Below the pieces are notes generated by a model that was given only the letters and a program-made list of their open reading frames with translations, was not told the DNA's origin and did not search any database. A stretch of 64,000 nt of DNA from Phaeosaccion multiseriatum (taxonomy: Eukaryota; Protista; Ochrophyta, other classes), in contig OZ218951.1 of NCBI GenBank assembly GCA_965112735.1, positions 434,001 to 498,000 of the forward strand, read 5' to 3'. Shown piece by piece: positions 9,410 to 47,139 of this stretch (its first letter is position 1; each line of letters opens with the position of its first letter). Both the position numbers and the translations under genes were made by a program.

Positions 9410-10399
9410 GTTCTTTTAGTATACCCTGAGAATATTTTTGCGGACATATTCGACTGGTGCCACACATGTCATCAGAAGGTTATTCCAACCAGGCAGCACA
9501 CCACACCGCTCGCTCTCCGCTGAAGTTCGAAAGGAGAATGAGGGACGTCTTCCTCGAAGTCGCAATTGCATGTGATCTTACCAATCGTGTAGTTGTGAAC
9601 CACAGTGTCCTCTTGTCGCATAGCAACGCCCTCTTCGTCGCTTGTACAGAGAAGGTCGCCCGTTTGCAATGCTCCGTTCTGATTGCAGACCCATATAGCA
9701 CTCTCTCCATCCGTACTAATCGTCACTCTTCGATCCTTCTTTTCCTTGTCTTTCTCAAACTGCAAGTTGCCAATCGCAAAAGTTCGTCGCTCATCCCCTT
9801 CGCTTTCACACGAAGAGAGTACTCCAAACACGGCCTTATCAGTTGCCTTCTGAGACAAAGTCACAACCGGAATGGCTTCGTCAATATCAATTGATGATTC
9901 CATTTGCAAATTACAATACTTTCCAGTCGAGCATACTACCTTTCCAACCGCATGGGATTCAAAGAGACCGTCATCTACTGTGCGACAACTATGCGATCCC
10001 GTGAAATTCAGCACTCCTTCTTTGAATTCCTCAGCAAACAGAACGGCGGTGCCTTTGTTGCTCAGAAACAACAGGTCCGACTTCGTATCGTCCTTCTGCC
10101 GATTTATGATATGCCAGTGAGTCTCGTTGGAGGAGTTACTCAACGTCATATAACTGTCGACCGTCATGTTGTTACTGACAGAAAGGTGATCTTCAATGTG
10201 CATGGTCTCATACTTGCGATCCACAATTTCCGCGAGAAGGTCCGCAGTTAGCGTGTTGGAGTTAATTGTGAGGTCCTGTGCCTCGATATGACCGAATACA
10301 ACTGACGAGTCCCCAATTGAATCCGAGTCTCTGCTGATAAAGCTAGATATGAGCGTTTCGTTGAGGAGGTAGTCTCCAATCTGGATCTGATCAATAATT

Positions 10400-11445
10400 C
10401 CATCACTGGCAAATATAGTTCCGTTCACGGTCAGAGTGTAATCCGCTGTGTCCGTGTTGATCCCCACATTTCCTTCCTCCTTTATGACAAGAGCTGTCTC
10501 GTCCTGGTAGCTGAAACGCGCCACGTCCTCCTCTGCGTACTGGTCCACGAGTAGCGCCACGTCCGTTCCAGTGTTCGAGAGGCTGAGCTGATCCGTAATT
10601 TCGGTGGCGGCATTGATGTGCGCGGTGTCTCCCTCTACGAGGAATTCTCCTGAGATGGAGACGTTCGAACTGACAATCGACTCGAAGTTGACCTCACCCA
10701 GGAATTTGGAAGTGTCCTCATTGATCAAGAGAGAGTCTCCGATCTTGATCTCCGTGGCAAACACGGTTCCGTCCACGGTTAGTGTGTAGTCCGCTGTGTC
10801 CGTGTTGATCCCTACATTTCCTTCCTGCTTTATGACGAGAGCAGTCTCGTCCTGGTAGCGAAAGCGCGCTACGTCCTCCTCTGCGTACTGGTCTACGAGC
10901 AGCGCCACCCCCGTTCCCGTGTTCGAGAGGCTGAGCTGATCCGCAATTTCGGTGGCGGCACTGATATGCGCGGTGTCTCCCTGTACGAGGAAGTCGCCTG
11001 AGATGGAGACGTTCGAAGTAGCAATCGACTCGTAGTTGACCTCACCCAGGAATTCGGAAGTGTCCTCAGTGATCAAGACAGAGTCTCCAATCTTGATGTC
11101 CGTGGCAAATACGGTTCCATTCACGGTCAGCGTGTAGTCCGCTGTGTCCGTGTTGATCCCCACATTCCCTTCCTGCTTTATGACGAGAGCAGTCTCGTCC
11201 TGGTAGCTGAAACGCGCCACGTCCTCCTCTGCGTACTGGTCTACGAGCAGCGCCACGTCCGTTCCAGTGTTCGAAAGGCTGAGCTTGTCCGTGATTGTCG
11301 TAGCGACGTTGATTTGCGCCGTATCTCCTCCCTGCACCAGGAAATCCCCGGAGATAGTGACGTTCGAACTAACAATGGATTCAAATTGGACTTCACCCAG
11401 GAATTCGGAAGTGCCCTCGTTAATGAAGAGTGAATCCCCGATGTT
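10400..11445 (-). repeat. Three 348-bp (116-aa) tandem repeats inside the fibre gene
   Basis: TCCGTGTTGATCC recurs at 10451, 10799 and 11147. Ends of the repeated region are approximate. Confidence 0.9.
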
Positions 11446-12129
11446 GATGTAGTTGTCCTCAGTGATGGTTCGCTCTGTTGTATTGTAAGGCAAGAGGACA
11501 ACATTGTTCGATCCTGTATTGACGATGTTCTCGCCCATGATGATGCTCTGTGACCCACTGTTCTGGATGGAGTTTCCCATCGCGATTGCTGATCCGCCTA
11601 CAGAGTAGGCATTGTACCCAGAAGCTATGTTGTAGTTTGTACTGTTGGTTTGCTTCAGATTGTTGTTGCGCCCGATGCTGATATTGTAGTGTCCGCTTGT
11701 GCTTCCCGAGAAAGAGTTCCCCTCACTTCCGAGAACAATATTGTAGTTCCCTTTCGTGTCGGTACCGGCTTTTGATCCGAGGAGAATATTGTATGACCCT
11801 GAGGTATAGGCACCGGCCGAAACTCCTTGAATAAGGTTGTAGGAGCCCGAGTTGTACTCCCCTGCTTGTGTGCCGAGCAGAGTGTTGTAATGAATAGACG
11901 TATCTCCCTCTGCCCCAAAGCCTGTCCGAGAGCCAATATACACATTATTTCCACCGCTCTGGAGGTTGTACCCAGAGTTGTGCCCCATCATCACATTTCC
12001 CGTACCCGAAAGCGAATGCGTGTATCCGCTGTAGTTGCCCAAGAAGATGTTGGAGTTCGTTGTTGTGGAAGAGTATCCAGCCTGGTGGCCTATAATGAGC
12101 ATGTTCTTGCCCGTGAGCAAGTTATACGC

Positions 12130-12491: not shown

Positions 12492-15400
12492 ATGGTTACG
12501 CCTTCAGAGCAGGATAAGTATGACACCAGCGATTGGAGAGGAGATTGGCCGATTCTTAAAGGGCAGAAGACTCCGATCAGAGTGAACACCTTTGTGTATG
12601 GCTATGAGAGGTGCGCAGAGAGAATGAGACTCGCTAGACAGCAAGCTCGCATTCCCGACATGGCTACTTTGTTGGACCCTGTTCTGAGAACGCAAGCCAG
12701 CGTTGAGTTAAAGGTACAGGTAACAGAGCTGAACACTGAGAACGTGAAGAAATGGCTCAAGGATTGGTTGAAGGAACATTCTGAGAGCGACGTGCAAGGA
12801 GAGACACTTGCATCTATTGCCGACGAGATCACGATAGAATGTGCGAATCGTGAGAACGCCGGAGCGCTGAAGGAGGCTTTAATATATGCCCATACGGAGT
12901 TTTTGGGTATGATCAAGAACAGCTCCTTCAGCTCCCTCTTGCAGACGGAGGATGGCACTGCAGACAATTGGTGGCTGCCCAAAGATAAGGCGGCTACGAA
13001 GTCCATCAGGTTTGCTTTCAACAGTGTCTTGAACCGATTTGATTCCAATATGGTGAAGCTCATTAAAGATGCCGAGAGACAGTGGCAGAGCTCGATTGAT
13101 TGGGACAAGAACTACAAGCAGTGGTTTGAGCTCGTGATTGATATCCACATGGGGTGGGCTAATGCTCGAGCTGCTGCCGCGCGAGCGAATCTCACGGCGG
13201 AACAGGCCTTGCCCAACTTGAAGAAGACGGGAGGAGGCAGCTCTGCTAATTCTGGAAAGGGGGGAGAGCCCGCCTGGAAGAAGAAGAAGCAAGAGCAGGC
13301 GGCGGCCAAGAATGGTGCAGCTGCGAGTGGTGGTCCGGTTGAAGCAAAACCCAAGGAGGATGTTAAGCCTGCCGGAGGAGGGGGGGCTAAGGAGCCACGC
13401 CCTTTCTCTGGAAAGTGTCTTTCATGTGGGTTAGCCCACACCCTCAGGAAGTGCCCAACGACCTCCCAAGATCAGAAAGATCGGCTGTGGGCGGACTATA
13501 AGAAGAAACACCCGCACATTAAGGTCCTGGCATCAGCAGAGGCAGATGCAGGAGCCGTAGCAGAGGATGTGGAAGGGGAGAGAGTCACAGTTGATCTCGT
13601 CGCCAACCCATCTGAGACGGTGTCGGAAGCCGCACGGCTGAAGATTTCCGCAGTTTGGGACTCGGGCTGTGATGTGGGGCTGGTTATCTCCCGCCGAGAT
13701 GCAGACAAGTTTGTTGCGCTCGGGCGAGGTGGCGAGCTCACAGTCATTAAACCCCGGAGCCTCAAGACTGGAAATGGCCTGGTCGAAGCCACGCAGGTTT
13801 TGACAGGAGCGCATTTGTTGTTTGACTTTCCATGGGGGCCAGTGAGTACCCTTCAGATGGAAGAGAGTCTGCGCAATGCGTACGTGTTGGAGGAGATCGA
13901 CATGATGTGTCTAGGTCGTCCTCTTCAGAAGGCTTTTGGACTATCATCCATTCGAGCCCAGTTCGAGACGATGCATAGCGAAGAAGCTTTGCGTCGCGAA
14001 CGAGAGACTGCGGAGAAGGAGAAGGAGGCAGAGCCTCACAGCTCCAGCGCAGGTAGAGTGATGAGTCTCTTTTCGTCGGCTCCCTCAGAGGAGAGTGACG
14101 ATTTGTGTCCTGTTGAGCAGGGGACGGGCAAGACGCCCATAGTAGGATCGGTAGGAACCTACCACCTTAACAATGAAGAGATCAAACAGTATGACGGTGT
14201 AGCTGATACCATTCAGCAACCTGAGGACGGACTGCCGCCCACATACGAGAGCCTAGAGGCACGTTTGGGGTCAGTCGTCGACAATGCTATAGCAGAGCAT
14301 GATTTTCCCGAGCGGTTGAAAGAACCGATGCTGAGGGCACTACTGAAGTGGCCTGACGTGTGGCGGGATGAGTTACTGTGGGAGGACGGTGCTGCTAAGG
14401 TTGAGCCGATGAAGGTGCAGTTCAAGAGCTCTGAACCACATTCGCAGCTCCCTATCAAGCAACCCGGTCCGAAGGCGGCCTTTGTGCGCGAGTTCACCAA
14501 TAAAATGGTAGACAAGGGCTTTGGCTACAGCAACCCGCAGAGCGTGTATTCTAACCGAGCCTTCGCAGTGGGAAAGCCGGGAAAGCCCGGTAAGTACAGA
14601 CTGGTGTGTGACCTTCGGGCAGCTAACGCAAACACAGTCAAGGTTGATTTCGGTATGACTGACACGGAGACTATCTCTCTCGCACTGCGAGGGGCCAGAT
14701 GGTTTATTGAGATTGATGGCAAGGATTTCTTTTGGCAATTTCCGCTCGAGGAGTGGTGCCAGGAGCATTTCACTTACATAACCTCAGACGCAAAGGTGAC
14801 TCCTACGAGAGTACCACAGGGAGCCCTCAACTCAGCGGCATATGTGCAAGGTACCATGAGCGAGGTCTTTCGCGAGGAAGTCGGTAAGACTCACGCTGTG
14901 TACATTGACAATATCGCCTACTGGGCTATCGAGGGTGAGGAGCTGGTCGAGAGGACCGAACTCACCATGGACAAGCTTCACGAGAAGAACTTGAAGATGG
15001 GAGTCAGCTCATTCAGTTTCGGAAGTGAGTTGAAGTTCGTGGGCAGAGTGCATGACAGACATGGTACTCGTCACGATCCGGAGCGAATTCAAGGTCTGAC
15101 AGACTTGGGTACGCCGGAGACAGCGGGCGATCTGATGACGTTCCTGTGTGGAATACAGTGGTTCAACCGCTGGGTGAAAGATTTCGCACAGTGGGTGGGG
15201 CCTCTGTATGACTTGTTGAATGAGTGTTTGGGGGAGGCTAATGCCAAACCGCATCAGCACAAGCGCTCTAAGGCTGTGGCTGCAACTATTCAACTAGACA
15301 AGAGGTGGACAGCTGAGCATGACGCGGCTTTCTTGGGGATCAAGCGCGTGCTCGCAGAGAACACGGTGCGCGCTCACCCGGACCCTGAGCAGGTAGTACT

Positions 15401-17606
15401 AGTGTTTGCAGACGCCAGTGACCGCTACTGGGGGGGCATGATCGCACAGTGTAGACCCGAGAACGTGGGTCTTCCTCTTGACGAGATGGACATGGAGCCG
15501 GTCGCTTTCTGTTCAGGTGGCTTTGGGAAGCATGAGCTCAAGCGAGCAACTGTGGACAAAGAGGCAGATGCCACTTACCGGACTGTGATTCAGAATGAGT
15601 ACGCTTTGGTAGGGGCGAGGAAGGTATACATTTTCTGCGACCATCGCAATTTGGCTTTTCTCTGGTCTAACGACCCACAGTACCCGGGTCTGACCAAACC
15701 CATGCGAGAGCGGCTGCAGCGACAGGCACTTCGATTGCAGGCATTTGACTATACAATTATGCATTTGCCTGGCGACAAGCACTTGTGGGCTGACCCTCTG
15801 AGCCGTTGGCGCAAGAGGACGAGCCATGCAGCGCCTTGCGTGTTGGCTCTACGAGGCGGGAAATTCGGAGCCATGCAGGTCTTTGACATGATGGCGCCTG
15901 ACTTTCTTTGGCCCACGGAGCAGGAGATTGTCAGCGTTCAGCAGGAGGCCTTTGCAAAGCTCCTGGACGCTGGCAAAGAGGTGGGAGAGAGTGGTCGCCA
16001 ACTGCTTCTCTCACAGACTGGCGACGGCGGTCTGATTCGAGCAAAAAGTAGCACAGATGACGACGCTCAGCAGTCAAAGATTTGGATACCGCGTAAGGCA
16101 GAGGATTTGCGCCTTCGGCTCAGCGTAGTGGCCCACCAGGGGGGCATGGGCCATCGTGGGATGACCAACACGCTGGAAGCTGTAGGGAAGGACTTTGTCT
16201 GGCATGGCCAGCATGAGGATATCAAGCGCTTTGTGAACGAGTGTATTCATTGCCTTAGCAATGGCGTAGGGCTGCGCGTTCCTCGACCGCTTTTGGGTCA
16301 ATGGCATGCTACCAAGCCCCAGCAGATGATATGGTTTGACTATGTCAAGATGGGCAAGGGTATCATTTGGGTTGATGGACCTGATGGGTTCATGCAGATT
16401 CAAGTACAGTACGCGCTATGCATTTTTGATGACTTTTCGTCCTTGACAATGTACGAGCCGTGCTATGAGGCTACCGCACGAGGGTGCGCGCGGGCTTTGC
16501 TGAGATGGTTTGCTCAGCATGGCATTGTGCCTCGATGGCAGAGTGACAGAGGCAGTCATTTCCTCAATGAGGTGATGAGCGAGCTGAGAGCAATGTTGAG
16601 GTGTGATCATCATTTTGTGGTGGCACATGCGGCTTATAGCCGTGGACTTGGGGAGCGCGGAGTGCAAACGCTTCAGAAGCTTATGCAGCCGCTACTATCA
16701 GAGATGAGGGCGCTACCAGAGTCGTGGCCGCAGTTTCTGCCAGTGGTCGAGTCCATCGAGAACAGTTGCACCAAGAGCAGTCGTTCCAGCAAGTCTCCGA
16801 TTGAGCTGCATTCAGGCCATGTACCTCAGCGCCCTATCGACACGGTTATGCTTCATGATGCTGATCGAGCGCAGAAGGTGGAGTTGAAGCAACTCACCCA
16901 AGCGCAGGTCGACACGATGGCTGAGGGGCTGCAGCAAATTCGGGAGCAGTTACGTACACGGGTCGAGGAGCACCTCTCCAAGATCAGGGAGCGCAAGCGT
17001 GATGGCATCAACGCACGTCTATTGCAGGGGCGGCGTGGCGCCGAGCACAGGAAGGATCTTGATCGCGCGCGCGAGCTCGCCAGCGAGTCAATTTTCCAGC
17101 CTGGAGTATTTGTGACGGTGGCGTCAGTGGGGCCTACGAGCAAGGTCGTTGGCCGATGGCATGGTCCTTGCCGAGTGACTGAGGCTCTCGAGCACCACGT
17201 ATATCGCATTGAGGAGTTAGTGGGACAGAAGCGCACTTTGGACGTGCACATCAACCGGCTACGCTACTACTGCGACGGTGATGTCAATCTTACTACCGAC
17301 GTCCTCCACCAGATCTCACACAGCACTCAGAGTTTCGTAGTCGAGTCTTTTGAGGGGCTGGTTAGGCGTGCTGATGGCAGCTGGTTCTTAATCGTCAAGT
17401 GGAGAGGCTTCGACGCAGTCGAGAACAGCGAGGAGCCCATCGAGCAGCTTATGGCGGATACACCCCAAGCAGTGGAGCAGTATCTCGCCAAGCATCCGGA
17501 CAAACAGCGAATCAGCGCAGTCCGAGCCTACTTGCGGGCCCTCTCGGAGCGGAACGCAGAGCGGGTAGTAGCGCCCAAGCGCAAGCGTACGCGCAAGAAG
17601 CGGTAA
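12492..17606 (+). CDS. Gag-Pol polyprotein (Gag zinc knuckle, protease, RT, RNase H, integrase, chromodomain)
   Basis: CLSCGLAHTLRKC; WDSGC; YRLVCDLR/FWQ/PQG/YIDN; FADASD; H-H-CC zinc finger with D,D(SDRGSHF),E; WHGPCRV; VKWRGF...SEEP chromodomain. Domain order PR-RT-RH-IN is Ty3/gypsy. Confidence 0.96.
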   Translation: MVTPSEQDKYDTSDWRGDWPILKGQKTPIRVNTFVYGYERCAERMRLARQQARIPDMATLLDPVLRTQASVELKVQVTELNTENVKKWLKDWLKEHSESDVQGETLASIADEITIECANRENAGALKEALIYAHTEFLGMIKNSSFSSLLQTEDGTADNWWLPKDKAATKSIRFAFNSVLNRFDSNMVKLIKDAERQWQSSIDWDKNYKQWFELVIDIHMGWANARAAAARANLTAEQALPNLKKTGGGSSANSGKGGEPAWKKKKQEQAAAKNGAAASGGPVEAKPKEDVKPAGGGGAKEPRPFSGKCLSCGLAHTLRKCPTTSQDQKDRLWADYKKKHPHIKVLASAEADAGAVAEDVEGERVTVDLVANPSETVSEAARLKISAVWDSGCDVGLVISRRDADKFVALGRGGELTVIKPRSLKTGNGLVEATQVLTGAHLLFDFPWGPVSTLQMEESLRNAYVLEEIDMMCLGRPLQKAFGLSSIRAQFETMHSEEALRRERETAEKEKEAEPHSSSAGRVMSLFSSAPSEESDDLCPVEQGTGKTPIVGSVGTYHLNNEEIKQYDGVADTIQQPEDGLPPTYESLEARLGSVVDNAIAEHDFPERLKEPMLRALLKWPDVWRDELLWEDGAAKVEPMKVQFKSSEPHSQLPIKQPGPKAAFVREFTNKMVDKGFGYSNPQSVYSNRAFAVGKPGKPGKYRLVCDLRAANANTVKVDFGMTDTETISLALRGARWFIEIDGKDFFWQFPLEEWCQEHFTYITSDAKVTPTRVPQGALNSAAYVQGTMSEVFREEVGKTHAVYIDNIAYWAIEGEELVERTELTMDKLHEKNLKMGVSSFSFGSELKFVGRVHDRHGTRHDPERIQGLTDLGTPETAGDLMTFLCGIQWFNRWVKDFAQWVGPLYDLLNECLGEANAKPHQHKRSKAVAATIQLDKRWTAEHDAAFLGIKRVLAENTVRAHPDPEQVVLVFADASDRYWGGMIAQCRPENVGLPLDEMDMEPVAFCSGGFGKHELKRATVDKEADATYRTVIQNEYALVGARKVYIFCDHRNLAFLWSNDPQYPGLTKPMRERLQRQALRLQAFDYTIMHLPGDKHLWADPLSRWRKRTSHAAPCVLALRGGKFGAMQVFDMMAPDFLWPTEQEIVSVQQEAFAKLLDAGKEVGESGRQLLLSQTGDGGLIRAKSSTDDDAQQSKIWIPRKAEDLRLRLSVVAHQGGMGHRGMTNTLEAVGKDFVWHGQHEDIKRFVNECIHCLSNGVGLRVPRPLLGQWHATKPQQMIWFDYVKMGKGIIWVDGPDGFMQIQVQYALCIFDDFSSLTMYEPCYEATARGCARALLRWFAQHGIVPRWQSDRGSHFLNEVMSELRAMLRCDHHFVVAHAAYSRGLGERGVQTLQKLMQPLLSEMRALPESWPQFLPVVESIENSCTKSSRSSKSPIELHSGHVPQRPIDTVMLHDADRAQKVELKQLTQAQVDTMAEGLQQIREQLRTRVEEHLSKIRERKRDGINARLLQGRRGAEHRKDLDRARELASESIFQPGVFVTVASVGPTSKVVGRWHGPCRVTEALEHHVYRIEELVGQKRTLDVHINRLRYYCDGDVNLTTDVLHQISHSTQSFVVESFEGLVRRADGSWFLIVKWRGFDAVENSEEPIEQLMADTPQAVEQYLAKHPDKQRISAVRAYLRALSERNAERVVAPKRKRTRKKR

Positions 17607-18270: not shown

Positions 18271-20406
18271 CGAGTGATTCGGGACAAACCACGACTTCGA
18301 GCGCATTTGGCCGACCATTTCGTGGAATTTACACTTCCGGTCGAAGCCATGATATGAGGCCTCGTGTACCGCTGGTCTACCGTGTTTGGCACCCTGAGAC
18401 GTAGTTTGGGATCCCTACGCCCCTGCGACGGGATGGTGGAGTGGTTCGAGTGATTCGGGACAAACCACGACTTCGAGCGCATTTGGCCGACCATTTCGTG
18501 GAATTTACACTTCCGGTCCGAGCCATGGTGTAAGGCCTCGTGTACCGCTGGTCTACCGTGTTTGGCACCCTGAGACGTAGTTTGGGATCCGTACGCCCCT
18601 GCGACGGGATGGTGGAGTGGTTCGAGTGATTCGGGACAAACCACGACTTCGAGCGCATTTTGCCGACCATTTCGTGGAATTTACACTTCCGGTCCGAGCC
18701 ATGATATGAGGCCTCGTGTACCGCTGGTCTACCGTGTTTGGCACCTCGAGACGTAGTTTGGGATCCGTACGCCCCTGCGACGGGATGGTGGAGTGGTTCG
18801 AGTGATTCGGGACAAACCACGACTTCGAGCGCATTTGGCCGACCATTTCGTGGAATTTACACTTCCGGTCCAAGCCATGATATGAGGCCGCGTGTACCGC
18901 TGGTCTACCGTGTTTGACACCTTGAGACGTAGTTTGGGATCCCTACGCTCCTGCGACGGGATGGTGGAGTGGTTCGAGTGATTCGGGACAAACCACAACT
19001 TCGAGCGCATTTGGCCGACCATTTCGTGGAATTTACACTTCCGGTCCAAGCCATGATATGAGGCCTCGTGTACCGCTGGTCTACCGTGTTTGGCACCCTG
19101 AGACGTAGTTTGGGATCCGTACGCCCCTGCGACGGGATGGTGGAGTGGTTCGAGTGATTCGGGACAAACCACGACTTCGAGCGCATTTGGCCGACCATTT
19201 CGTGGAATTTACACTTCCGGTCCGAGCCATGGTATGAGGCCTCGTGTACCGCTGGTCTACCGTGTTTGGCACCCTGAGACGTATTTTGGGATCCCTACGC
19301 TCCTGCGACGGGATGGTGGAGTGGTTCGCGTGATTCGGGACAAACCACGACTTCGAGCGCATTTGGCCGACCATTTCGTGGAATTTACACTTCCGGTCCA
19401 AGCCATGATATGAGGCCTCGTGTACCGCTGGTCTACCGTGTTTGACACCCTGAGACGTAGTTTGGGATCCCTACGCCCCTGCGACGGGATGGTGGAGTGG
19501 TTCGAGTGATTCGGGACAAACCACGACTTCGAGCGCATTTGGCCGACCATTTCGTGGAATTTACACTTCCGGTCCGAGCCATGATATGAGGCCGCGTGTA
19601 CCGCTGGTCTACCGTGTTTGGCACCCTGAGACGTAGTTTGGGATCCCTACGCCCCTGCGACGGGATGGTGGAGTGGTTCGAGTGATTCGGGACAAACCAC
19701 GACTTCGAGCGCATTTGGCCGACCATTTCGTGGAATTTACACTTCCGGTCCGAGCCATGATATGAGGCCTCGTGTACCGCTGGTCTACCGTGTTTGGCAC
19801 CTCGAGACGTATTTTGGGATCCGTACGCTCTTGCGACGGGATGGTGGAGTGGTTCGCGTGATTCGGGACAAACCACGACTTCGAGCGCATTTGGCCGACC
19901 ATTTCGTGGAATTTACACTTCCGGTCCGAGCCATGATATGAGGCCTCGTGTACCGCTGGTCTACCGTGTTTGGCACCCTGAGACGTAGTTTGGGATCCCT
20001 ACGCTCCTGCGACGAGATGGTGGAGTGGTTCGAGTGATTCGGGACAAACCACAACTTCGAGCGCATTTGGCCGACCATTTCGTGGAATTTACACTTCCGG
20101 TCCAAGCCATGATATGAGGCCTCGTGTACCGCTGGTCTACCGTGTTTGGCACCCTGAGACGTAGTTTGGGATCCGTACGCCCCTGCGACGGGATGGTGGA
20201 GTGGTTCGAGTGATTCGGGACAAACCACGACTTCGAGCGCATTTTGCCGACCATTTCGTGGAATTTACACTTCCGGTCCGAGCCATGATATGAGGCCTCG
20301 TGTACCGCTGGTCTACCGTGTTTGGCACCTCGAGACGTATTTTGGGATCCGTACGCCCCTGCGACGGGATGGTGGAGTGGTTCGCGTGATTCGGGTCAAA
20401 ACCACG
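18271..20406. repeat. Tandem array of a 176-bp unit, 12 full copies plus a partial 13th
   Basis: Units start at 18271 + 176k up to 20383 with no length variation. One GGATCC per unit; few substitutions. Confidence 0.97.
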
Positions 20407-20523
20407 GTCTCGTGCCAGCTCACAAAGTGTCCTGAGACACACTTACTCCACCAGCTTAAGGCTCTGACGTGTTACATCAGATATAATAAGAAAAAGGGGG
20501 GTATCTCAAGCCCTCGTTCCATC

Positions 20524-22071
20524 ATGGCGTTCCAAAACGTGCTCGATATGACGAAAGGATGTCTTCGTGAAAGCACGTCGAATCAAGCTAGCAGCACGAT
20601 TTTTACAGAAGACGAGCCGGTGGGAGTCCGCGAGGGTTACAGGGAGGCCCAGAGGGGTAAGAAACCTGAGGACTTCAGCGAGACCAAGGAGTCCAACGAG
20701 ACCAGCGAGACCAGCGAGTTCGAAGACACCAACGAGTCCAACGAGACCAAGGAGACCAAGGAGACCAAGGAGACCAAGGAGACCAAGGAGACCAAGGAGA
20801 CCAAGGAGTCCAACGAGACCAGCGAGTTCGAAGACACCAACGAGTTCGAAGACACCAACGAGACCAACGAGACCAGCGAGTTCGAAGACACCAACGAGAC
20901 CAAGGAGACGAACGAGACCAAGGAGTCCAACGAGTCCAACGAGACCAACGAGACCAAGGAGTCCAAGTCTTCTAATGACTCTCGAGGGTCTCCAGATTCA
21001 CGAGAGGCGCGAGAGGCAAGTGGAATCAGTTTGCAGGAAATGCTTCGCTCAATGAAGACTAGCCAGACGAGTGATAGTAGCCAAGCAAGCATAACAACAG
21101 GTAGAAAGGAATCTCCTGTCCGCCCAAGGACAAGGTCCGGGAAATTCTCGAAGGACCAAATGTTCTGCGAACCATTGAGAAGCAGTTTACTACGACAACA
21201 GGCCAATACACGTCATCTCGAGTCCTTCTGCACCGTTCGAGCTGGGTCTGAGGAGTATACATCGCCATCACCGTCTTCTCGGGCCGTGGTGAACCATGCT
21301 CTTCCTGTCCTTGATCGTAACCTGATGGAGGCTCCGGCTCCGATATGGAAATGGTCGGAAGGCATCGACTCAGCTTTCTGGCGTGCTTGCATCGGCGAAC
21401 TAGTTGCGACGATGCTTTTCCTCTTTATCTCCATCTCGAGTGTTGTGTCTGTGGTGCGCACGGAAGAGAGCTGCGACGCTTCTGCCTCCAGTCTATTGTC
21501 CATATCCCTCAGCTTTGGTTTCACCATCATGGTGTTGGTGTACGTATTTGCAAACGTTAGTGGAGCTAATATGAACCCTGCTGTATCTCTTGCTCTTGTT
21601 CTTTCGAGACGGATGAGTGCCCTGCGTGGTGTGGCGTACACGGTTGCACAGTGTGGAGGGGCAGTTGCGGGTACAGCTTTGGCGAGGGCTGTACACGAGG
21701 ATGCATTCGATTTTCTCGGGAATGGGGCCATCAATTCGATCTCAGATTCCGCCTCAACACTTTCCGCTTTTGTAGGTGAAATGCTGATGTCTTGCTTCTT
21801 ATGCGGCACTGTTCTAGTGGCAACGGACGCGTCTTTGGCGCAAAAAACCGAACATAACTTCTCGCTGCTACCTTTCTCGATCGGTATGGCGGTGTTTTTG
21901 GGGCATCAAGTGCTGATTCCCATCACAAACTGTAGCATCAACCCAGCTCGATCATTTGGTACCAGCGTTCTCGAGAATGAATGGGACGACCACTACATAT
22001 TTTGGGTGGCGCCAGTCACAGGGAGCGTATTGGCAGCCGGGCTTGTGGCCGCAACGAAGCGATACTTGTGA
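20524..22071 (+). CDS. Aquaporin (MIP family, PIP-like) with long N-terminal extension containing 9-bp (ETK/ETN/ESN) repeats
   Basis: [36 protein letters not shown]...H...[27 protein letters not shown] and [11 protein letters not shown]. Intronless; ATG at 20524. Confidence 0.93.
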
Positions 22072-22242: not shown

Positions 22243-23217
22243 ATGGAAGGGGAAGATGCCTTGTTCGCAAAGAGTATACTGCGGGACACTATTAAAATCC
22301 ATCCTTCTGAGATGAACAAACGGAGAGACGACATTGTGCTCACCATATTGCGAGACAAGTTTGAGGGGAAGTGTTCTCACTACGGATACGTGAAGAAACA
22401 TAGCATTCAATTGATGCGTGTATCCATTGGAGTGCTGGAGTTTCCAAGCTTCCACGCCTATACTACGTACGACGTGGAGTTCACTGCAGACGTGTGCAAC
22501 TTGCTGGAAAAGACTCGCGTCTCTTGCAAGGTCTCCAAAGTGAACAGCTTTGGCATTCTTTGCTGTTTGAGCACTTCGGAGACGGAGCAAGATGTGTTTG
22601 CACAAGTCCTCCTTCCCAAGAACACCATTTTCATTCAGCATGATATCAACCTTGACAATGCAGCTGTTGGAGACACGATCATGGTCCAGATTCTGTCGAA
22701 GCAGTTCTCCCAGAACGACACCTACATCAGCGCTATTGCCACAGCTATAGATCCCAATCGCACCGAAACAGGGGTAGGAGAGCCTAGTCAAACGGGAAAC
22801 AAAGACACGAAGGCGATGGAAGAAGACGATGATGGGGGGAACACGGGTGTTCGCGATACGAATAGAACCCGGAGGAGCGAATCAGGCGACATAGGGGTTG
22901 GAGATGAGCAAGATGCGGATGTGGCGAGCAACGAAGATGCAGGCGATGCAGACGATGCAGACGATGACGTGGACGAGGATGAGGATGAGGATGAGGAAGA
23001 GGACGAGAACGAAGATGAAGACGAGGACGAGGATGAAGACGAGGACGAGGAGCCACAAGGCGACGACGAAGCTTTCAGTGAGGTAGACGATGATGACGAT
23101 GATATTGTCAATGATGATGATGATGATGATGATGATGATGTGGAATCGGAGGGTATCGTGAGTGACATGGAGGTTGATGAGGATGATGATGGTAGTGCGC
23201 TCGAGACGAAGGTATGA
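22243..23217 (+). CDS. DNA-directed RNA polymerase subunit RPB7-like (viral) with long acidic tail
   Basis: IKIHPSEM...LRDKFEGKCSHYGYV...YDVEFTADVCN...VNSFGI followed by an S1/OB-like segment and poly-D/E. Confidence 0.85.
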   Translation: MEGEDALFAKSILRDTIKIHPSEMNKRRDDIVLTILRDKFEGKCSHYGYVKKHSIQLMRVSIGVLEFPSFHAYTTYDVEFTADVCNLLEKTRVSCKVSKVNSFGILCCLSTSETEQDVFAQVLLPKNTIFIQHDINLDNAAVGDTIMVQILSKQFSQNDTYISAIATAIDPNRTETGVGEPSQTGNKDTKAMEEDDDGGNTGVRDTNRTRRSESGDIGVGDEQDADVASNEDAGDADDADDDVDEDEDEDEEEDENEDEDEDEDEDEDEEPQGDDEAFSEVDDDDDDIVNDDDDDDDDDVESEGIVSDMEVDEDDDGSALETKV

Positions 23218-23313: not shown

Positions 23314-23952
23314 ATGGAGCATACCTTCTCGTTACTGGAGTCATACAATAAAGAGCCGAATGGTAAGAGAAAGAGTGAGATTCTGAAAGAGCTGAACGCT
23401 CTGAAGAAAGCCAACCTCGCCAAAGACAACCTTCTGTATGCCTTCAATCAGGAGAGCGTAAAGCTTCGGCTCGCGTACAGCTCGATTGGATCCAGTCCAG
23501 AGGTGTTTAGTTTGACACAGAATCAGCGATTGCTGAAGTACCTCTTCAGCATGGAGACACCGAACACCGCGCTCGTTCTCTTCCATGGCACAGGGTCGGG
23601 AAAAAGTTGCACCAGTCTCCAAATCGCCGAGAACTTCAAACACAAGTATAAGAAGAAAGCCCTCATTCTGGCACAGTCAGGAATCCAAGACCAGTTTCGC
23701 CGCGAAATCTCCAGTGTTGCCAAAATTGCGAACGAGGAGTCTTTCACGCAGCAGTGCCTATCAAATGCCTACGTCCCTAGAACCCAAAGAAAGAGCGATC
23801 CGCGATCAGTTCAGCGATCTGTCAATCGCCTCGTGAACAAGGACTTTGAGTTCCAGAGTCATGCAAAAATGTCGAACGAGGTGCGTGCTGCTCGAGAGAC
23901 GCTCAACCCGAAAGATTTCCGACGCTGGGTGGGAAAGAAGTATTCAAGATAG
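23314..23952 (+). pseudogene. D6/D11-like (VETF-S/NPH-I type) SF2 helicase, N-terminal fragment truncated at the virus/host junction
   Basis: Q motif (LTQNQRLL) and LVLFHGTGSGKSCTSLQIAE; ends at KKYS just before the expected DExH Walker B. Confidence 0.85.
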
Positions 23953-23958
23953 GATTGT

Positions 23959-26900
23959 GGGGGGGAGCGGCGGGAGTGTCGCTGTTGTTCTGCCGGGTTC
24001 GCTGATAGCGAAGCTGAGCAACCTATGCTCGAGCAGCTCCGTCACGCTGTTTGTGGGGCTCATGGGCGCGTTCCAAGTGCTGCTGGCTCGTGTGTGCGGA
24101 GCTGAGGATGTGGTGGTGGGCACTGCGCACTTCGGAAGAGACGTGGCGCAAGGCTTGGAGGGCGTGCTGGGATGCTTCGTCAACACCCTCGCGTTCCGTC
24201 TGGGCCTGGGAGGAAGCCCCAGCTTTCGGGAGGTGCTGCTTCGCGTACAGGTCGCGTATCTGGGTGCCATGAAGCATGCCCAGGCACCGTTCCACAAGGT
24301 GGTGGAGCGGGCCCAGCTGGGCACAAAGAGTGGTGGCAAGGCGCTGCAGGCCTTCTTTGTACTGCAGGAGGGAGATGCCAGCGCCGTGGAGGAGGAGGCT
24401 CTGCTGTCAGCTGGAGCACTCCACAAGATCATGACGGAGGAGGCTGGAGAGCAGCCGGCCAATAATTTTAGCAAGACTGACATCGAGCTAAGCCTTGTGC
24501 GCAGCACGGACAGTGCGTCGGACATGCACGGCAGCCTGTGCTACAATACGGCGGTGCTCGACCAGGCCACAGTGGAGACCCTGGCGCGGAGTTTCCTGGC
24601 GCTGCTGGAGAGTGCAGTGGGCAGGCCGGGCGAGAGCGTGTGGAAGCTGAGTCTCTTGGCACACGAGGACCGTGTGAAGGTGGTGGAGACGTTGAGCGGC
24701 GCTGCACTGGTGGCGGGGGATGCCAATGGAGACGAGGAGGGAGGTGCAGAGGAAGCATCGCCACCACCGCCCCTCCTGCACGCGGCTTTCGAAGGGATGG
24801 CCTCTCGCAGTCCGGAGCAGGAAGCCCTGCACGAGTATGAGACGGGTCGGGTGATGAGCTACGGGGAGCTGAATGGGCATGCGAATGCGGTGGCATGCAT
24901 GCTGCAGGGGAGGGGCGTGGGGCCGGAGTGCCTGGTGGGGGTGCTGATTGCTGGGGACTGCGTGGAGGCGGTTGTGGCAGTGCTGGGCGTGCTCAAGGCC
25001 GGGGCGGCGTACGTGCCCCTGGATCCCGAGCATCCCGACGATAGGCTGTCGATGATCGCACAAGACACCGGGCTGAGCGTCGTTCTGACGACGGCAAAGG
25101 CATCAGGCGAGTCTGAGGTGCTGGCAACCGCCGATGCCAGCTTAGCGCGGCGTGTCGGAGACGTGAGCTGTGTGGACGTGGTGGCTGTGATGCAAGTGGA
25201 GAGTACAGCGGAGCCTGTGTGCCACGCCGTGGGCGAGAACATGGCGTACGTGATTCACACGTCCGGTAGTACGGGCCGGCCAAAGGGCGTGATGATTGAG
25301 CACAGAAGCACGGCCAGCTTCATGGCGACTCTCTACGAAGAGGAACTGACCATAACGGCATCTTCGCGCGTGCTTCTGTGCAGCGCTTTGACATTTGATG
25401 TGTCTGTGGCGTCGCTGTTCGGGGCGTTGTCGTGTGGGGCGACACTGTGCTTGGCGGAGAAGGGCTCCATGCTGAACGACCTGCCGGGGCTGATACGGTC
25501 TTTGATGGTAACGGACATGTGCTGCACCCCGTCACTGCTGTCGCTGCTTCGGCCGGAAGACATCACCAATGGAGCTAAGGAGGCCACCTTACGGTCCATC
25601 GCATTGGCTGGGGAGCCGATCAAACAGGACGAAGTGGACATGTGGAGGAACCATGTGCGCCTTGTCAATAGCTACGGCCCAACAGAGGCGACGGTTTTCG
25701 CGACCGCACATGAGTACAGTCCGGGTGCCATGTCGAGTGGGTTTGTCATCGGCAAGCCTCGAGCCGGCGTGCAGGTGTATGTGGTGGACAAGCGTCTTCA
25801 GCTGGTGCCTCAGGGCGTGGAGGGCGAGCTGTGCATTGGGGGGAGGCAGCTGGCGCGTGGGTACTTGAATCGCCCAGAGCTCACGTCGAAGGCCTTCATC
25901 CCCGCGCCCTTCCTGGCGGACCAGCGCAGAGTGTATCGTACGGTAAGTCGAAAAGGTTGCCCATGGGTGTGCGGCTTTGTGTGTGTGCGTGTATTGTGTG
26001 TACATTTGGCTTGCTTTTGGCATGTCATGCAGTGACAAGCAGAGCGCAGGGGGGGGTGGAGGTAGGTTTATCTGCTGCCTATGGTGTAGTGTTCTGACGC
26101 GTCTCAAACTGAACACGTTCGGACAGGGTGACTTGGTGCGGCAGCTGGCAGACGGATCGCTGGTGTTTAGCGGTCGCCGAGACTCTCAAGTGAAGGTGCG
26201 CGGCTATCGCATTGAGTTGGGCGAGGTGGAGGCTGCGCTGCTCCATCAAGAGGGGGTGGTGAGCGCTGTGGCAGCGGTGGACAGAGAGCGCGAGATGATT
26301 GTGGCAGCTCTGACACCTTCTAGTGCCGAAGTTGAGATGGTGCTGCAAGGAGTGAGCAGGCTGCTACCGTCATACATGGTGCCGAGCACGGCTGTGGCCG
26401 TGGATGCTCTACCGATGACGAGGAGTGGGAAGAGAGACGTGAAAGAGGTGCTGAGGATGATCAAGGCGGAAGCGAAGGGAAACAAAACCGCTGTAAAGGC
26501 GTCCGACGGCGACGAGGCGTTAGGCGACACTGCCCGCCAAGTGCTGGGCATCCTGAGGCAGGCCACGGAGCAGCCTCACTTGCAGGCCAATGACGACTTG
26601 TTCGCAGAGGGAGGCACATCGTTGAGTGCAGCTCAGGCGGTTTCGCGTATTCGGGCAGAGGTTCCCGGCTTCGAGGTGAGTGACTTTGAGCACAAAGCTT
26701 TCGTCGTGTTGTGTCTCGCCCTTGTTGCTGACCCTGTTGTGTCTGTGTGACTTCTGCAGGCTCTGACAGTAATGCAGATCTTCCAGAACCGAACCGCTGT
26801 GGCACTTTCAGTGCTTGGTGCCGCGGAGGAGGGCGGAGGTCGAGGAGACAGCGGGCAAGAGTCGTCGGCAGCAAGCGAAGCCCGACTGAAGGACGAGGAG

Positions 26901-29402
26901 CGCGATTTTGAGTCAGTCGGTGAAGAAGGGGAAGCGATGAAGGCGCACAGGAGGCTCAGCACTGGCAAGCAAGTGGTGCTGCAGGTTCTGACTTGGCTGC
27001 TCGTTGTTGCTGTGCTCAGCTGCGGGTTTTCTCCCAGCTTCGTTGGCGTGTACTTGCTACGTAGAGCAGGGCGCGGCAATACGACGATTCTTTCTTGGCT
27101 ACCACTCCTCGTCGTCGTGTCAGTAAGCTGGTTCCTTGCCCTGATTGTAGTGGTGAAGTGGACTGTGCTTGGCCGTATGCGACCGGGGCGATGGTCCGTG
27201 AGGAGCTCGTACTACTGGCGGTGGTATGCTGTGCAGAATGTGCTGAAACTTGCCGCACTGCTGATTTCTGTCCTCCGTGGTACCTTCGCCTTGCGGGTGT
27301 GGAACCGCCTGCTGGGGGCACGAATCAGTGGAAGCGCGCGCTTAGAGAGCTGGCTGCTGCACGAGCATGACTTGATCGAGATTGGAGAAGGGGCAGTGAT
27401 CGAGTACGGAGCCGTCATTCGCCCGTCTGTCATTACTCGAAATGGCATGCTCCATGTCCATCGCGTGAGGATCGGGAAGGGAGCAAAGGTGTGCATACTG
27501 TCCAACGTGTGTCCGTCTCCATGGGAGGGGGGGCAGACGCAGGAGGGGGGGGAGGGCCTGAAGAAGGAGCCAAAGGACTTGGTCATCGACGAGGGGATGG
27601 AGCTCGGTCCGTACGCGTCGCTCGGCCATTCGCTACTCTCTGGCCCGCTGGCAGAGGTCGAGCGCGAGGAGGGGCTGCGGCGGACAGGAAAAGAGCTTTG
27701 TGCTTTGGCCCTGCTTTCAGTGACCCACTTGGGGTCGTACCTGCTGCCCCTCTGGATACTCGTGCTTGCCGGTGGGGGTGATGACGACGGCGCGGGGGAG
27801 AGTGTCCCCATCTTCGCTCGTGCATTGGCGTTCCCCGTGCTGCTGCTGATCGGAAGCATGCTGTACATGGTGGCAGTGCTATCGCTACAGCGTGTGTTCT
27901 TGCTGCTGGGCCCAAGCGCCACCACACGGCTGTCACTCGGAGTTCTTCAGGAGAGTCCTCTCTTCAAAGTTGGCTCCCTTCTTGTGGCACAATGTGGGCT
28001 CAACCGTGTTTTTGCTTCCGCCATGGGCGCCAGGCTGGAGCGGGGGTGCGCATTTCTTACCCTTCCTATCACTACGATATGGGACAAGCTCAGGATAGGG
28101 GAAAACTCCCAGCTCGCGGGCTCTGTGCACCTTTTCGCTGATAGGGGTGGTCGTGGAGACGAGGATACGCAAAGCATCACAATTGGGCGCTTCAGCATTG
28201 TTGCGAACGAAGCTCTTCTCCTAGGCGGAGCTTGCATTGGGGACGGAAGCACGGTGGCAGATCGCACCGTTGTGAGTAGAGACGACGGCGTACCGTGCAA
28301 CTCTTCTGTAGTGGGCGCCCCTCGGCCATTTGTATTGCCGAACCCAGTGAGTGCTGCCGCTGAGAAGGGTGGCGTCGATGCAGCAGCCAGTCTTCCTGTT
28401 CCGTCGAGGATGCACAATGCGCTCCGTGGGCTTGCGACTGTGATAGTGCTCCTCGGCGTATGGTGTCCGGGGGTGTTGATCAGCGCGTCGGTATCTGACC
28501 TGCTGTTGCGCAATGGCCATGTGCATGGGGCTGCCGCCTTCTGTCCCTTCGTCCTTCCGGAAGTGGTGGCGAAGGATACTCTGAGCGAGAGCCATACTGG
28601 AGTGTTCTTCCTTGTGTTGGGGAGCTTCGTCTTTCAAGTTCTTATGGCCTTGGCGGGCGCTTGCTCAGCCATTCTTTTCCATCGAGTTCTGGGCACATCC
28701 TTGCATGCCAAAGAGGGGCAGCCTCCCATAGCGCTCGATTCGCCTTCGTTGGATATATACCGCTTGGGCAGCATGGCCCCTGCCTTCATTGAGGCTCTCT
28801 GCATCAAGTACTTCGCGGGCGGGCCGGTGTACGCGGCGTGGCTGCGGCTGCTGGGGGCAAGTGTTGGCAAGGACACATCTTTATGGCTCAGGCCTTATGA
28901 TGCGCATCTTCTCGTCATTGGAGACGAAGCGGTGGTGTTGCAAGACTCCACAATCTTCGCGCACACCATCGAAGGCACGGGAGGGCTCATCTTCAAGACT
29001 GTGCAAGTCGGGGAGAACGCGTGGCTCGGAGCAAGGGCTCACTTGCAGCCTGGATGCCGCGTTGAAGCAGGAGCTAACGTTGGTGACCTGAGCATGGCTA
29101 TGAGAGGTGAAAGTGTCACCAACTCAAAGCGTGGAGACGTGGCGTGGGTGGGCATACCGCTGAGAAAGCACGTCTTGTCCTCCCGAGCGCTCGCTGCGCC
29201 GCGTCGTCACGGAACGGGGCTGGACAGCGGCGGAGCACCTGCAGAAGAAGAGCAAAATCTTCGCAGCAAGGGCAGAGGGGGGTCGAGGAGACATGTGGTT
29301 CGAGAGAGAAGCAGCCCGCTCCGAGGAGGAGCGTCTTTCCGGCGGAAGAGTGTGCATCGGCCGGAGGAGACCAAGAGTGCCGATAGATTCGATGTAGTTT
29401 GA
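23959..29402 (+). CDS. 5'-truncated NRPS: partial condensation domain, adenylation, PCP and Pls-like membrane/hexapeptide terminal region; introns 25943-26126 and 26676-26759
   Basis: C-domain second half ([15 protein letters not shown]). A motifs [46 protein letters not shown]; YRT|GDL is restored across a GT-AG intron; [28 protein letters not shown]. Then three TM plus LLGAxIG/hexapeptide blocks. Confidence 0.88.
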
Positions 29403-31740: not shown

Positions 31741-34700
31741 ATGGCGGAGGGAGAAGGCATACTGACGGTGAAGCACGGCGGCAAGAGCGTGGAGGTCGAG
31801 GTTCCCGAGACGCTGGGGGCGCTGAAGGACAGACTGCACGCGTTATTTGCGGTGCCTTCTGCCCACCAGAAACTAATATATCGGGGCAAAGCGCTTGGAG
31901 GAGGAACAGCTTCAGGCGAGGATGTGCTTCTCTCCGACCTCGGCATCGATAAGCAGCAGCGTAGCAAGCTTCTCCTCGTTGGGAGCACACAGGTGCGCGC
32001 TGAGGTAGAGAGGGGGCGGGGCGAGCGGGGGGGGGAGGAGGGGAAGGCGGGGGTCCCTTCAGAGGCTGCGGGGCATTAGTGGGGGGCTTGATGTGTATCA
32101 TCGATAGGACGTCGTCCTGCTTATGCTGCGTGTCCTTGCTGGCGACAAGTGACCGGAGTTTGGGGAAGGGGTTCCGCCCTATTTGGGCCTCAAGTCGGTC
32201 CGTAGCTACGGCAGTCGGTCAAGCTCATACACGTCTCGCTCTTGCGAACCCGACAGGAGGACGTGGAGGCTCTGGAAGCAGGTCGGGAGGCAGCGCTGGC
32301 AAAGATGGCAGCAGACAGGACCAGACCGCTGGTCATGGACAACGAGGCCGGGCCCGGGGGGGCGGGGGGCGTGCCCAAGGGTTACAAGAAGATTCCTCTT
32401 GGCGCCGGAAGGGGGGGAGGGGGCAGCAAGTACCGCTTCGGACGCATAGAGACCCTCCCCGGGCTGCCCGAGGAGGACAAAGCTCGGGCCATCCTGGAGG
32501 GGCTCGCCAACGATCCGGGCATTCTCGCGGGTTCGTACAGTACAGTAGAGGGTGTCAGGCCTGGCTGGTGGGTGTTTGCAAGGGCTGGGGCAGGAAGGCG
32601 AGCACAGCACTGCAAAACAGGACAGGCCCATTCAGGCCCATTGTGTTGTACGTCGTTCTGTGCTGAGCTCCAATGAGTGGCGTGAAATGATATGGCGTGC
32701 ACTGCCCCCCTGACCTTGTGCTGGCCCCGTATCACCCCCAAAAAGGCAAAGGCAGGCCCTCAGCGCCCTTCCGCTCCCCTCCCTCCCTCTCTCCCTGCCC
32801 CACCCTCCCATGCCCTTGACCTAAGCAGTGCTGGAGCTGCACAAGTGGAGCGTGGGTGCCCTCTGCGAGTTGCCCCCCGAGGGCAAGGTGGGGGTGAGCG
32901 AGCGGTGCATCATGGGGCTCAACGAGAACTTCGGTCAGAGGATCCTGCTGAGGCTCAGGACCGACGACATGCAGGGCTTCCGTAAGGCGCTGTCCATCAA
33001 GAAAGTACTCTATCACGAGTAAGTCACTGAAGAGCTGAAGAGGGGAGGGAGTGCCCAGTGGGTTTTGTGATGGGGGCGGATGGCGCTGGAGGGGTAAAGG
33101 TGGAGGGACGGGAGAGGTAGACGCATCGTCTTCTCTCATCTTCGCTTCTCCCGGTGCTCGCATCCCCCACCTTGCCTCTCAATCTCTCTCCTCCCTTCCT
33201 TCCCTCTCTTTCTCTCTCTCTCTTCTTTCCCGCTACCCCTTGTCCGTCCCTTTCAACCCCCTAAAGGCTCGCCCACAACGAGGTAGGACCCCACAACGAC
33301 GCCTTCTACATTCTCATGCGCCAAGTAGAGAGGGAAGCAAACGCCTCTGACTGGACCCAAAGCAGGGGCAAGTCTGTCTCGGCAAGCAGGGCCGTATACC
33401 GAGACGAAGAGCGCATGGCCAATGGACCCTACGTGCTTGTCAAAGAGGCCTTTGAGGGAGGCTCCGGGCGCTTGGGAGGCGAGAGCAGCGGCCTCACTGC
33501 TCTTGTGCCTGCAAGGGACTTGGCAGCGACGGCGGCGATGGGGCGGTTGAGCGCGGAGGAGATGGAGGTGGAGGAGGGGTGCGGGTGCTCGTCAGGAAGG
33601 TTACGGGGGGGGGGGGCGAGCGTGATGGAGCAGGAGGAGGAGGAGGAGAAGGGGCACGAGGAGGAGCAAGAGGAGGGGGGTGTGGTACTGGCAGGAGAGG
33701 AGAGCATGGCACTGGAGCAGCCCGAGCCACCTCAGCAGGCAAGCGACCAGAGCAGGATAGGGGGAAGCAATCCGCTCACGGGGGCGGAGGAGGTTCGAAG
33801 GGAAGACGAGGCGGAGGGGATGGATGCGATGATGGCAGAGGCATCGCTGGGGGTTCTGCCGTCTTTACCATCGCAGTCTCTTCAAGCGCCACCAGCAGCG
33901 CCGTCACCACCACCGGTAGCTTCAGGGGTATCGGAGGAAAAGCAGCAGCTGGGTATAGTACATCAGCAGGAGAGAGAGAGGGAAGAGGAGGAGGAGAAAG
34001 AGAGGAAGAGGGAGGAGGAGGAGGAGGAGGAAGAGAGAAGGAAGAAGAAGGAGGAGGACGAGGAGAGAGCGGCAGCTCTCTCGCAGCTGCTGGCGATGGG
34101 CTTCGACAGACCCGCGGCAGAGGCGGCCCTGGTGCGCTGCTCGGGAAGGGCAGAGGAAGCCATCGAGTGGCTCCTCACAGGGGGTGGAGGGGGGTGGGGG
34201 GCGAGGAGGGCACAGAAGCAGTAGCCCCAGGAGCCCCAGGAGGAGGAGGGCTGTCCCCCCCTGCGCACACACCTTCGCCTATGGACGTGGACGCTTCTCC
34301 TCCTGCTGTTGCTATACCACCAACTGCCGTAGCTGCTGTACCTTCCTCCCCTGAGGAGCGCGTACGGATGGCTGCGGCGGCTCTGGCGTGTGACGCGGAG
34401 GCCTCCCGAGCCCGCTTGGCGCTGGACACGTTGTCAAGCATGATGGGGGCCATCCTCGCTGAGCCCAAGGAGCAGAGGTTCAGGAGAGTGGTGAGTGAGT
34501 CTAGTGAGGCTGTGGGAGTGGTGTGGGGGGGGGGACGAGAGCGGCATCTCGTGTGATATTGATACATGTTTTATGTATTGTTTGTTTATTTCATGAAGGT
34601 ACAGTAGTTGTGGTGCAAGGTGGGGGCGTGGATCGTTATTCGCCTTCGTTCCACTCTCCCCTGCCCACCCCCCTCTCTTTTTCTCTTGTCTCTCCACTCA

Positions 34701-39103: not shown

Positions 39104-47139
<8,036 letters not shown>

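Follow-up and report, generated by a model that had tools for sequence, protein, structure and literature searches.

Among the membrane-tailed synthetases, the best described are Pls, the epsilon-poly-L-lysine synthetase of Streptomyces albulus, and PosA, the delta-poly-L-ornithine synthetase of Acinetobacter baumannii. In these enzymes the donor of the tail is a carrier-bound aminoacyl thioester and the acceptor is a free amine, and homologues of the Pls/PosA type occur in fungi, Metazoa, Alveolata and Amoebozoa (PMC10522769). Here we describe a gene with such a tail in a stretch of 64,000 nucleotides (nt) of the ochrophyte Phaeosaccion multiseriatum (GenBank assembly GCA_965112735.1, contig OZ218951.1, positions 434,001 to 498,000 of the forward strand), hereafter the window, in whose numbering all positions are given. 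The gene occupies 23951-29402 on the + strand, and like Pls and PosA it has an adenylation (A) and a thiolation (T, or carrier) domain directly before a tail of ~730 residues that takes the place of a thioesterase and contains three pairs of membrane helices along with three left-handed beta-helices (PMC10522769). We consider it reasonably probable that this sequence preserves only the 3' part of a gene for a hybrid megasynthase, most likely a polyketide synthase-nonribosomal peptide synthetase (PKS-NRPS), whose 5' part was split off by a giant-virus-like integration at ~23950, and that the tail served in chain release.

Three open reading frames (ORFs) cover the locus on the + strand (23846-26035, 25977-26750 and 26772-29402). 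Exon 1 (23951-25942, +; 664 codons, stop-free) encodes the C-terminal half of a condensation (C) domain (~23975-24673) and the adenylation core (~24797-25942). It is separated by intron 1 (25943-26126, +; 184 nt, GTAAGT..GGACAG, phase 0) from exon 2 (26127-26675, +), which holds the adenylation C-terminal subdomain and the start of the thiolation domain, with the A10 Lys codon at 26430-26432 and the codon for the phosphopantetheine Ser of GGTSL at 26619-26621. Intron 2 (26676-26759, +; 84 nt, GTGAGT..CTGCAG, phase 0) leads to exon 3 (26760-29402, +; 880 codons, stop-free), which completes the thiolation domain and continues through an acidic linker into the membrane tail and a TGA stop. Excision of intron 1 joins ..VYRT to GDLVRQ and restores the adenylation motif YRTGD, and excision of intron 2 joins ..EVPGFE to a 12-residue stretch of exon 3 and completes the carrier domain. 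Together the three exons make 1727 codons with no internal stop.

Homology searches were carried out exon by exon, each exon on its own. Pfam recognised Condensation, AMP-binding, AMP-binding_C, PP-binding and Hexapep at the locus, the third and fourth of these in exon 2 and the last in the terminal 876 residues, where TIGR02353 also matches (see below). The AMP-binding match runs from model position 4 to 384 of 384, i.e. the full adenylation core, and exon 1 alone scored 322 bits on TIGR01733, above the cut-off of 317.4; the Condensation match covers only model positions 227-452 of 456. No thioesterase or reductase domain was detected in Pfam and NCBIfam scans of the locus ORFs, and the carrier domain adjoins the tail, the PP-binding Ser lying ~50 residues before the first membrane helix. 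As an NRPS elongation module, the gene has a complete adenylation domain and the carrier Ser, and its condensation domain is without the catalytic half. A first-pass annotation of this DNA had called two GT-AG introns that restore conserved motifs, and had seen no thioesterase or reductase after C-A-T, and both observations were borne out by these data. It had also described a C-A-T unit, of which A and T are indeed complete; C is present in its C-terminal half only, so there is no complete C-A-T-tail unit here.

The missing part of the C domain coincides with a sharp boundary in the DNA. The condensation match starts at ORF residue 44, which equals residue 223-244 of solved C domains and C-A proteins. 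When P0044, a homologue from Chrysoparadoxa australica described below, was compared with the window by tblastn, the alignment opened at window position 23951 with P0044 residue 828; the C domain of P0044 spans residues 628-1068 with its HHSILDG motif at 743, i.e. before the aligned part. An HHxxxDG motif is absent from every frame of the 64-kb window, and tblastn of window positions 1-23950 gave neither an N-terminal C half nor a PKS piece. A complete upstream line in the same gene (full C, PKS, further modules) is likewise absent from 1-23950. The gene present here is a 3' remnant of a larger gene.

The GC step, a cut helicase-like ORF and the tblastn start of P0044 together place a virus/host junction at 23935-23975. 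The guanine-plus-cytosine (GC) content, in 100-nt bins, jumps from 0.51 to 0.62 at 23950, and the viral helicase-like ORF stops at a TAG (23950-23952) after only the N-part of ResIII; a scan of IMG/VR gave no relatives of this helicase fragment. Positions 1-23950 of the window form a giant-virus-like segment with a GC content of ~0.50. The first-pass annotation had its span begin at 23959, and while the features it described do lie at the positions it gave, 23959 belongs to the virus/host junction and is no gene start. The NRPS frame is open as far back as 23846, 35 codons into the viral flank, and the ATG at 23861 gives a chimeric ORF on paper.

It might be argued that the junction is a mis-join of the assembly and that the real gene is complete. 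The two genes break off within a domain at a single point, where the GC content also steps sharply, a pattern that a chimeric join would produce equally, and a run of seven G (G7) sits at the junction. On the other hand, the viral segment, which includes a fibre-like gene (9472-12120, -), has a retrotransposon insertion of its own, a sign of chromosomal residence; this Ty3-type element, inserted in the fibre-like gene, has an intact ORF (12492-17606, 1704 residues). We regard a mis-join as very unlikely.

The tail encoded by exon 3 matched TIGR02353, the model of the Pls/PosA family, in three stretches (E 3.2e-40, 138.2 bits) and did not reach the curated cut-off of 423.1. On the same model the canonical control tails P0009 and P0001 scored 593 and 687 bits, respectively, the tail of P0011, which follows a pocket of the D..E type (DSECYGGVT), scored 393 bits, and members of the non-canonical clade discussed below scored from 147 to 330 bits, the highest value being that of P0041. 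Each unit of the window tail matches all three units of Pls/PosA-family proteins. By these sequence comparisons the window tail is a homologue of the Pls/PosA tail, yet one that lies outside the polylysine/polyornithine synthetase family proper. Of the features of that family, the topology is found in the window, but the score, the A-T-tail arrangement without a C domain, and the pairing of Asp with Glu in the pocket are not.

A hydropathy scan gave six membrane helices in three pairs, at ORF-3 residues 64-136, 309-381 and 550-641, with a hexapeptide segment after each pair. An AlphaFold2 model, built from 50 aligned tails (mean predicted local distance difference test, pLDDT, 84.7; predicted template modelling score, pTM, 0.89), repeats one motif three times, namely a pair of long helices, two or three short ones and then a beta-helix. 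By hydropathy and the model, unit 1 (26961-27521, +) comprises a helix pair at 26961-27179 and beta-helix 1 at ~27279-27521, unit 2 (27696-28331, +) a helix pair at 27696-27914 and beta-helix 2 at ~27999-28331, and unit 3 (28419-29171, +) a helix pair at 28419-28694 and beta-helix 3 at ~28809-29171. The prediction is thus a pseudo-trimeric packing of three units, each a membrane-helix hairpin that leads into a left-handed beta-helix, and the published PosA model has the same layout (PMC10522769). Among solved structures, the best matches in a fold search were hexapeptide acyltransferases, and a sequence search of the PDB with exon 3 likewise returned weak hexapeptide acetyltransferase matches only; no solved Pls-type tail was among the sequence or fold matches.

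Eighteen positions are each kept in at least 90% of the 50 tails, and the window tail retains 16 of them, the changes being Gly to Ala and Lys to His. In unit 1, two invariant residues are kept, the Lys of the KW..GR motif and the Gly of LLGA. Also retained is the His of FAHT in unit 3 (codon 28962-28964), which is found in 48 of the 50 aligned tails. The ~870 residues that the first-pass annotation had described as three blocks of transmembrane helices with hexapeptide repeats are thus recovered by both hydropathy and modelling. Its likening of this region to the Pls/PosA type (TIGR02353) stands as to homology, but not as to membership, given a score of 138 bits against 423 and a position in the tree outside the canonical clan.

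To place the tail among its relatives we relied on two kinds of search with exon 3. A word-index protein search, whose length filter hides longer kin, returned distant A-T-tail proteins only. An exhaustive search of a representative library gave 1208 homologues with a top identity of 34%, and since nothing above 34% was found, the gene and its close orthologues must be absent from that library. For exon 1, a metagenome scan gave no relatives.

The order C-A-T-tail was found in four of the retrieved proteins, namely P0044, P0041, P0117 and P0178, the last two from metagenomes. P0044 (Chrysoparadoxa australica CAM9397790.1, L001) is a single intronless ORF that runs off the end of its contig and reads, in terms of dehydratase (DH), enoylreductase (ER), ketoreductase (KR) and acyl carrier protein (ACP) domains, ..DH-ER-KR-ACP-C-A-T-tail. 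P0041 is a transcript of the amoebozoan Phalansterium solitarium (EP01116_P002995). PKS lines that end in the tail with no NRPS part are represented by P0114 (from the jakobid Stygiella, 4380 residues) and P0137, and P0043 is a metagenome protein of the order oxidase-carrier-tail. The tail directly follows a carrier domain in all proteins for which the preceding segment was scanned.

The tail is not always the last domain. In the metagenome proteins P0055, P0063, P0095 and P0119, A-T-tail is followed by a flavin mononucleotide (FMN)-dependent alpha-hydroxy-acid dehydrogenase, and one of these clusters includes an MMETSP transcript. The P0151 cluster, from Eucalyptus grandis and E. globulus (e.g. 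XP_039159797.1), consists of proteins of ~2300 residues with the order amine oxidase-A-T-tail-catalase-like and falls in the same non-canonical clade.

In a FastTree phylogeny of 157 tails, the window tail belonged to a group of 32-35 rows, with full support, which contains every C-A-T-tail protein and both PKS-tail proteins and not one protein with a D..E pocket. In an IQ-TREE analysis of 50 tails under a mixture model, 21 canonical D..E tails formed one clan (99 by the Shimodaira-Hasegawa-like approximate likelihood ratio test, SH-aLRT) with the window tail outside it, and the window tail grouped with those of P0044 and P0043 (99 SH-aLRT). Because the end branch of the window tail is long, its exact sister is less certain than the side of the split on which it lies. 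From these trees, the window tail is placed in a separate, largely eukaryotic clade whose members close PKS, PKS-NRPS and other carrier-protein lines, and which reaches from a stramenopile alga to an amoebozoan, a jakobid, a dinoflagellate, a chytrid and Eucalyptus.

The adenylation pockets split the proteins in the same way as the trees, and the TIGR02353 scores run parallel to both. Read from its motifs, the code is DVACAASVF plus Lys, the same DVACAASVFK that the first-pass annotation had proposed by eye. In an alignment of 113 tail-linked A domains, 104 have Asp at code position 1 together with Glu at position 3, the combination discussed for PosA as a diamino-acid signature (PMC10522769). 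The window domain keeps the Asp at position 1 and has Ala at position 3, and the Glu is missing from all four C-bearing proteins as well. The pocket may be roomy and hydrophobic, which is only a reading of its residues. Three other tail-bearing proteins, P0058 (from the dinoflagellate Gymnodinium smaydae), P0113 and P0164, have pockets of the types AIW.., GVW.. and GIW.., and because these have no Asp at position 1 they suggest substrates other than alpha-amino acids.

The first-pass annotation had envisaged a membrane ligase that makes a polymer, and it is not unreasonable to ask whether the gene encodes a complete C-A-T-tail enzyme whose tail, in the manner of Pls and PosA, links an amino acid or peptide into a polymer for secretion. 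In favour are the homology of the tail to TIGR02353 and its Pls/PosA topology, the intact A and T domains, and the retained Asp at position 1 of the code. However, the condensation domain is only half present, the code is without the Glu that diamino-acid-activating domains carry (PMC10522769), the tail reaches 138 bits where the cut-off is 423 and two canonical tails score 593-687, and it lies outside the canonical clan (99 SH-aLRT). A polymerase of this kind is therefore distinctly improbable here, and the polymer-making role proposed in that annotation is weak. Its other suggestion, of a tail fed by an assembly line upstream, is exemplified by the relatives P0044, with ..DH-ER-KR-ACP-C-A-T-tail, and P0041, with C-A-T-tail.

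Given that the pocket is without the Glu present in 104 of the 113 tail-linked A domains, release onto an acceptor at the membrane side is likelier than homopolymer synthesis. That the tail would be the release step follows from the chemistry of the Pls/PosA tail combined with membership in a clade that closes carrier-protein lines.

The anatomy, the truncation, the homology and the clade placement established above are the ground on which a history of the locus can be proposed. While the ancestral gene was still full-length, an acyl or peptidyl chain arriving from upstream would have been coupled to the amino acid by the C domain, which would so have N-acylated it. As judged from the full-length relatives, this acylation would block the alpha-amine of the amino acid, and growth of a homopolymer is for that reason unlikely. 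The tail would have carried out acyl transfer of the Pls/PosA type once, as chain release, and the product on the last carrier domain (ancestrally an acylated amino acid) would have been passed to an acceptor at the membrane. The ancestor of the window copy would presumably have had a PKS portion upstream. A giant-virus-like element would then have integrated at ~23950, parting the 5' portion of the gene from the 3' remnant, and the present copy, having neither the catalytic C half nor anything upstream of it, can no longer make the original product. The open frames and undamaged splice sites fit a recent cut, and the integration would on that account be young.

Intactness of this degree also raises the question of whether the remnant is still in use. 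Starting from an in-frame ATG (e.g. 23861 in the viral flank, or the Met at ORF residue 73), it could yield an A-T-tail protein with a dead C stub, the layout of a stand-alone Pls, which could aminoacylate an acceptor or make short oligomers. There are 1727 stop-free codons with canonical splice sites, the adenylation core motifs, the carrier Ser and 16 of the 18 conserved tail residues are intact, and the NRPS frame is open back to 23846. However, this intactness may mean merely that the cut is recent, and the tail itself shows a shorter unit 2 and the substitution of a conserved Lys. We consider continued use of the remnant unlikely.

Several observations weigh against the history of a split and once functional release enzyme that we favour. 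Unit 2 has ~16 residues fewer after its helix pair than most relatives, the Lys of the unit-3 KW/KR motif, present in 45 of the 50 aligned tails, is His in the window tail, and the end branch of the window tail is long (1.8); these could be signs of early decay. In addition, the junction could be an assembly error, as discussed above, and the 5' part of the gene lies outside what was seen in the window. The release mechanism proposed for the non-canonical clade draws on the analogy with Pls and PosA, and no biochemical study of any member of this clade was found in the literature searched.

Taking the split megasynthase and its releasing tail as the preferred account, a more general proposal may be ventured, to which we give somewhat less than even chances. 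The non-canonical, mostly eukaryotic Pls-type tails might form a distinct class of chain-release domain that transfers a lipid or lipopeptide from its carrier domain to an acceptor at the membrane or on its far side, and the locus would be one such line broken by a giant virus, leaving an open A-T-tail unit that could act alone.

Elsewhere in the window, the giant-virus-like segment also contains a tandem array (~18.2-20.4 kb), an aquaporin-like ORF (20290-22071) and an Rpb7-like ORF (22243-23217). Downstream of the gene lie host-type genes for a UBA-domain protein (33316-34221) and, as an exon for a C-terminal winged helix, MCM6 (45670-46698). Ketosynthase pieces of a PKS gene start near the end of the window (60509-63948, +).

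Release chemistry sets what an assembly line makes, and none of the literature searched describes a PKS or PKS-NRPS line that ends in a Pls-type tail. If a membrane-embedded acyltransferase takes the place of the thioesterase, megasynthases of algae and other eukaryotes would deliver their products straight to an acceptor in the membrane or at the cell surface. To this group the locus adds an example that bears an NRPS module and has an adenylation pocket clearly not of the diamino-acid type, and it adds a case in which a giant-virus insertion cuts such a gene; if a virus-free allele exists, comparison of the two alleles could tie the gene to its product. The polymer idea is constrained as well, in that homology to Pls does not by itself make a polyamino-acid synthetase.

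Compared with the known systems, the locus resembles each in part. Of its relatives, P0044 and P0041 share with it the C-A-T-tail order. The alignment of P0044 with the window starts at the junction and extends through the whole tail, and the tail of P0044 is, with that of P0043, the closest to the window's; the protein differs in having a complete C domain with HHSILDG and DH-ER-KR-ACP before it, in being intronless, in being only 26-34% identical, and in its code, DAMMEGAVA. P0041, with C-A-T-tail in one transcribed ORF and a Glu-free code (DVSDVAIVT), differs in its complete C domain, its place in another sub-branch of the non-canonical tails and its 330 bits on TIGR02353. The likeness to Pls and PosA lies in the A-T-tail arrangement set out at the beginning, whereas the window gene is eukaryotic and intron-bearing, has a condensation remnant before its A domain and Ala instead of Glu at code position 3, and ends in a tail that scores below the family cut-off and outside the canonical clan.

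Hexapeptide-repeat acyltransferases such as maltose and galactoside O-acetyltransferase, serine acetyltransferase and LpxA share the fold of each soluble unit and the conserved His of the last unit. Those enzymes, however, are soluble homotrimers that use acyl-coenzyme A or acyl-ACP, whereas the window tail has its three units in one chain, with six membrane helices, fused to the carrier domain of its donor. Finally, the usual release domains of NRPS and PKS lines (thioesterase, reductase, terminal condensation) occupy the same place, at the end of the line and right after the last carrier domain, but none is present at the locus, and they are unrelated in sequence and fold to the tail found there, which is membrane-embedded.

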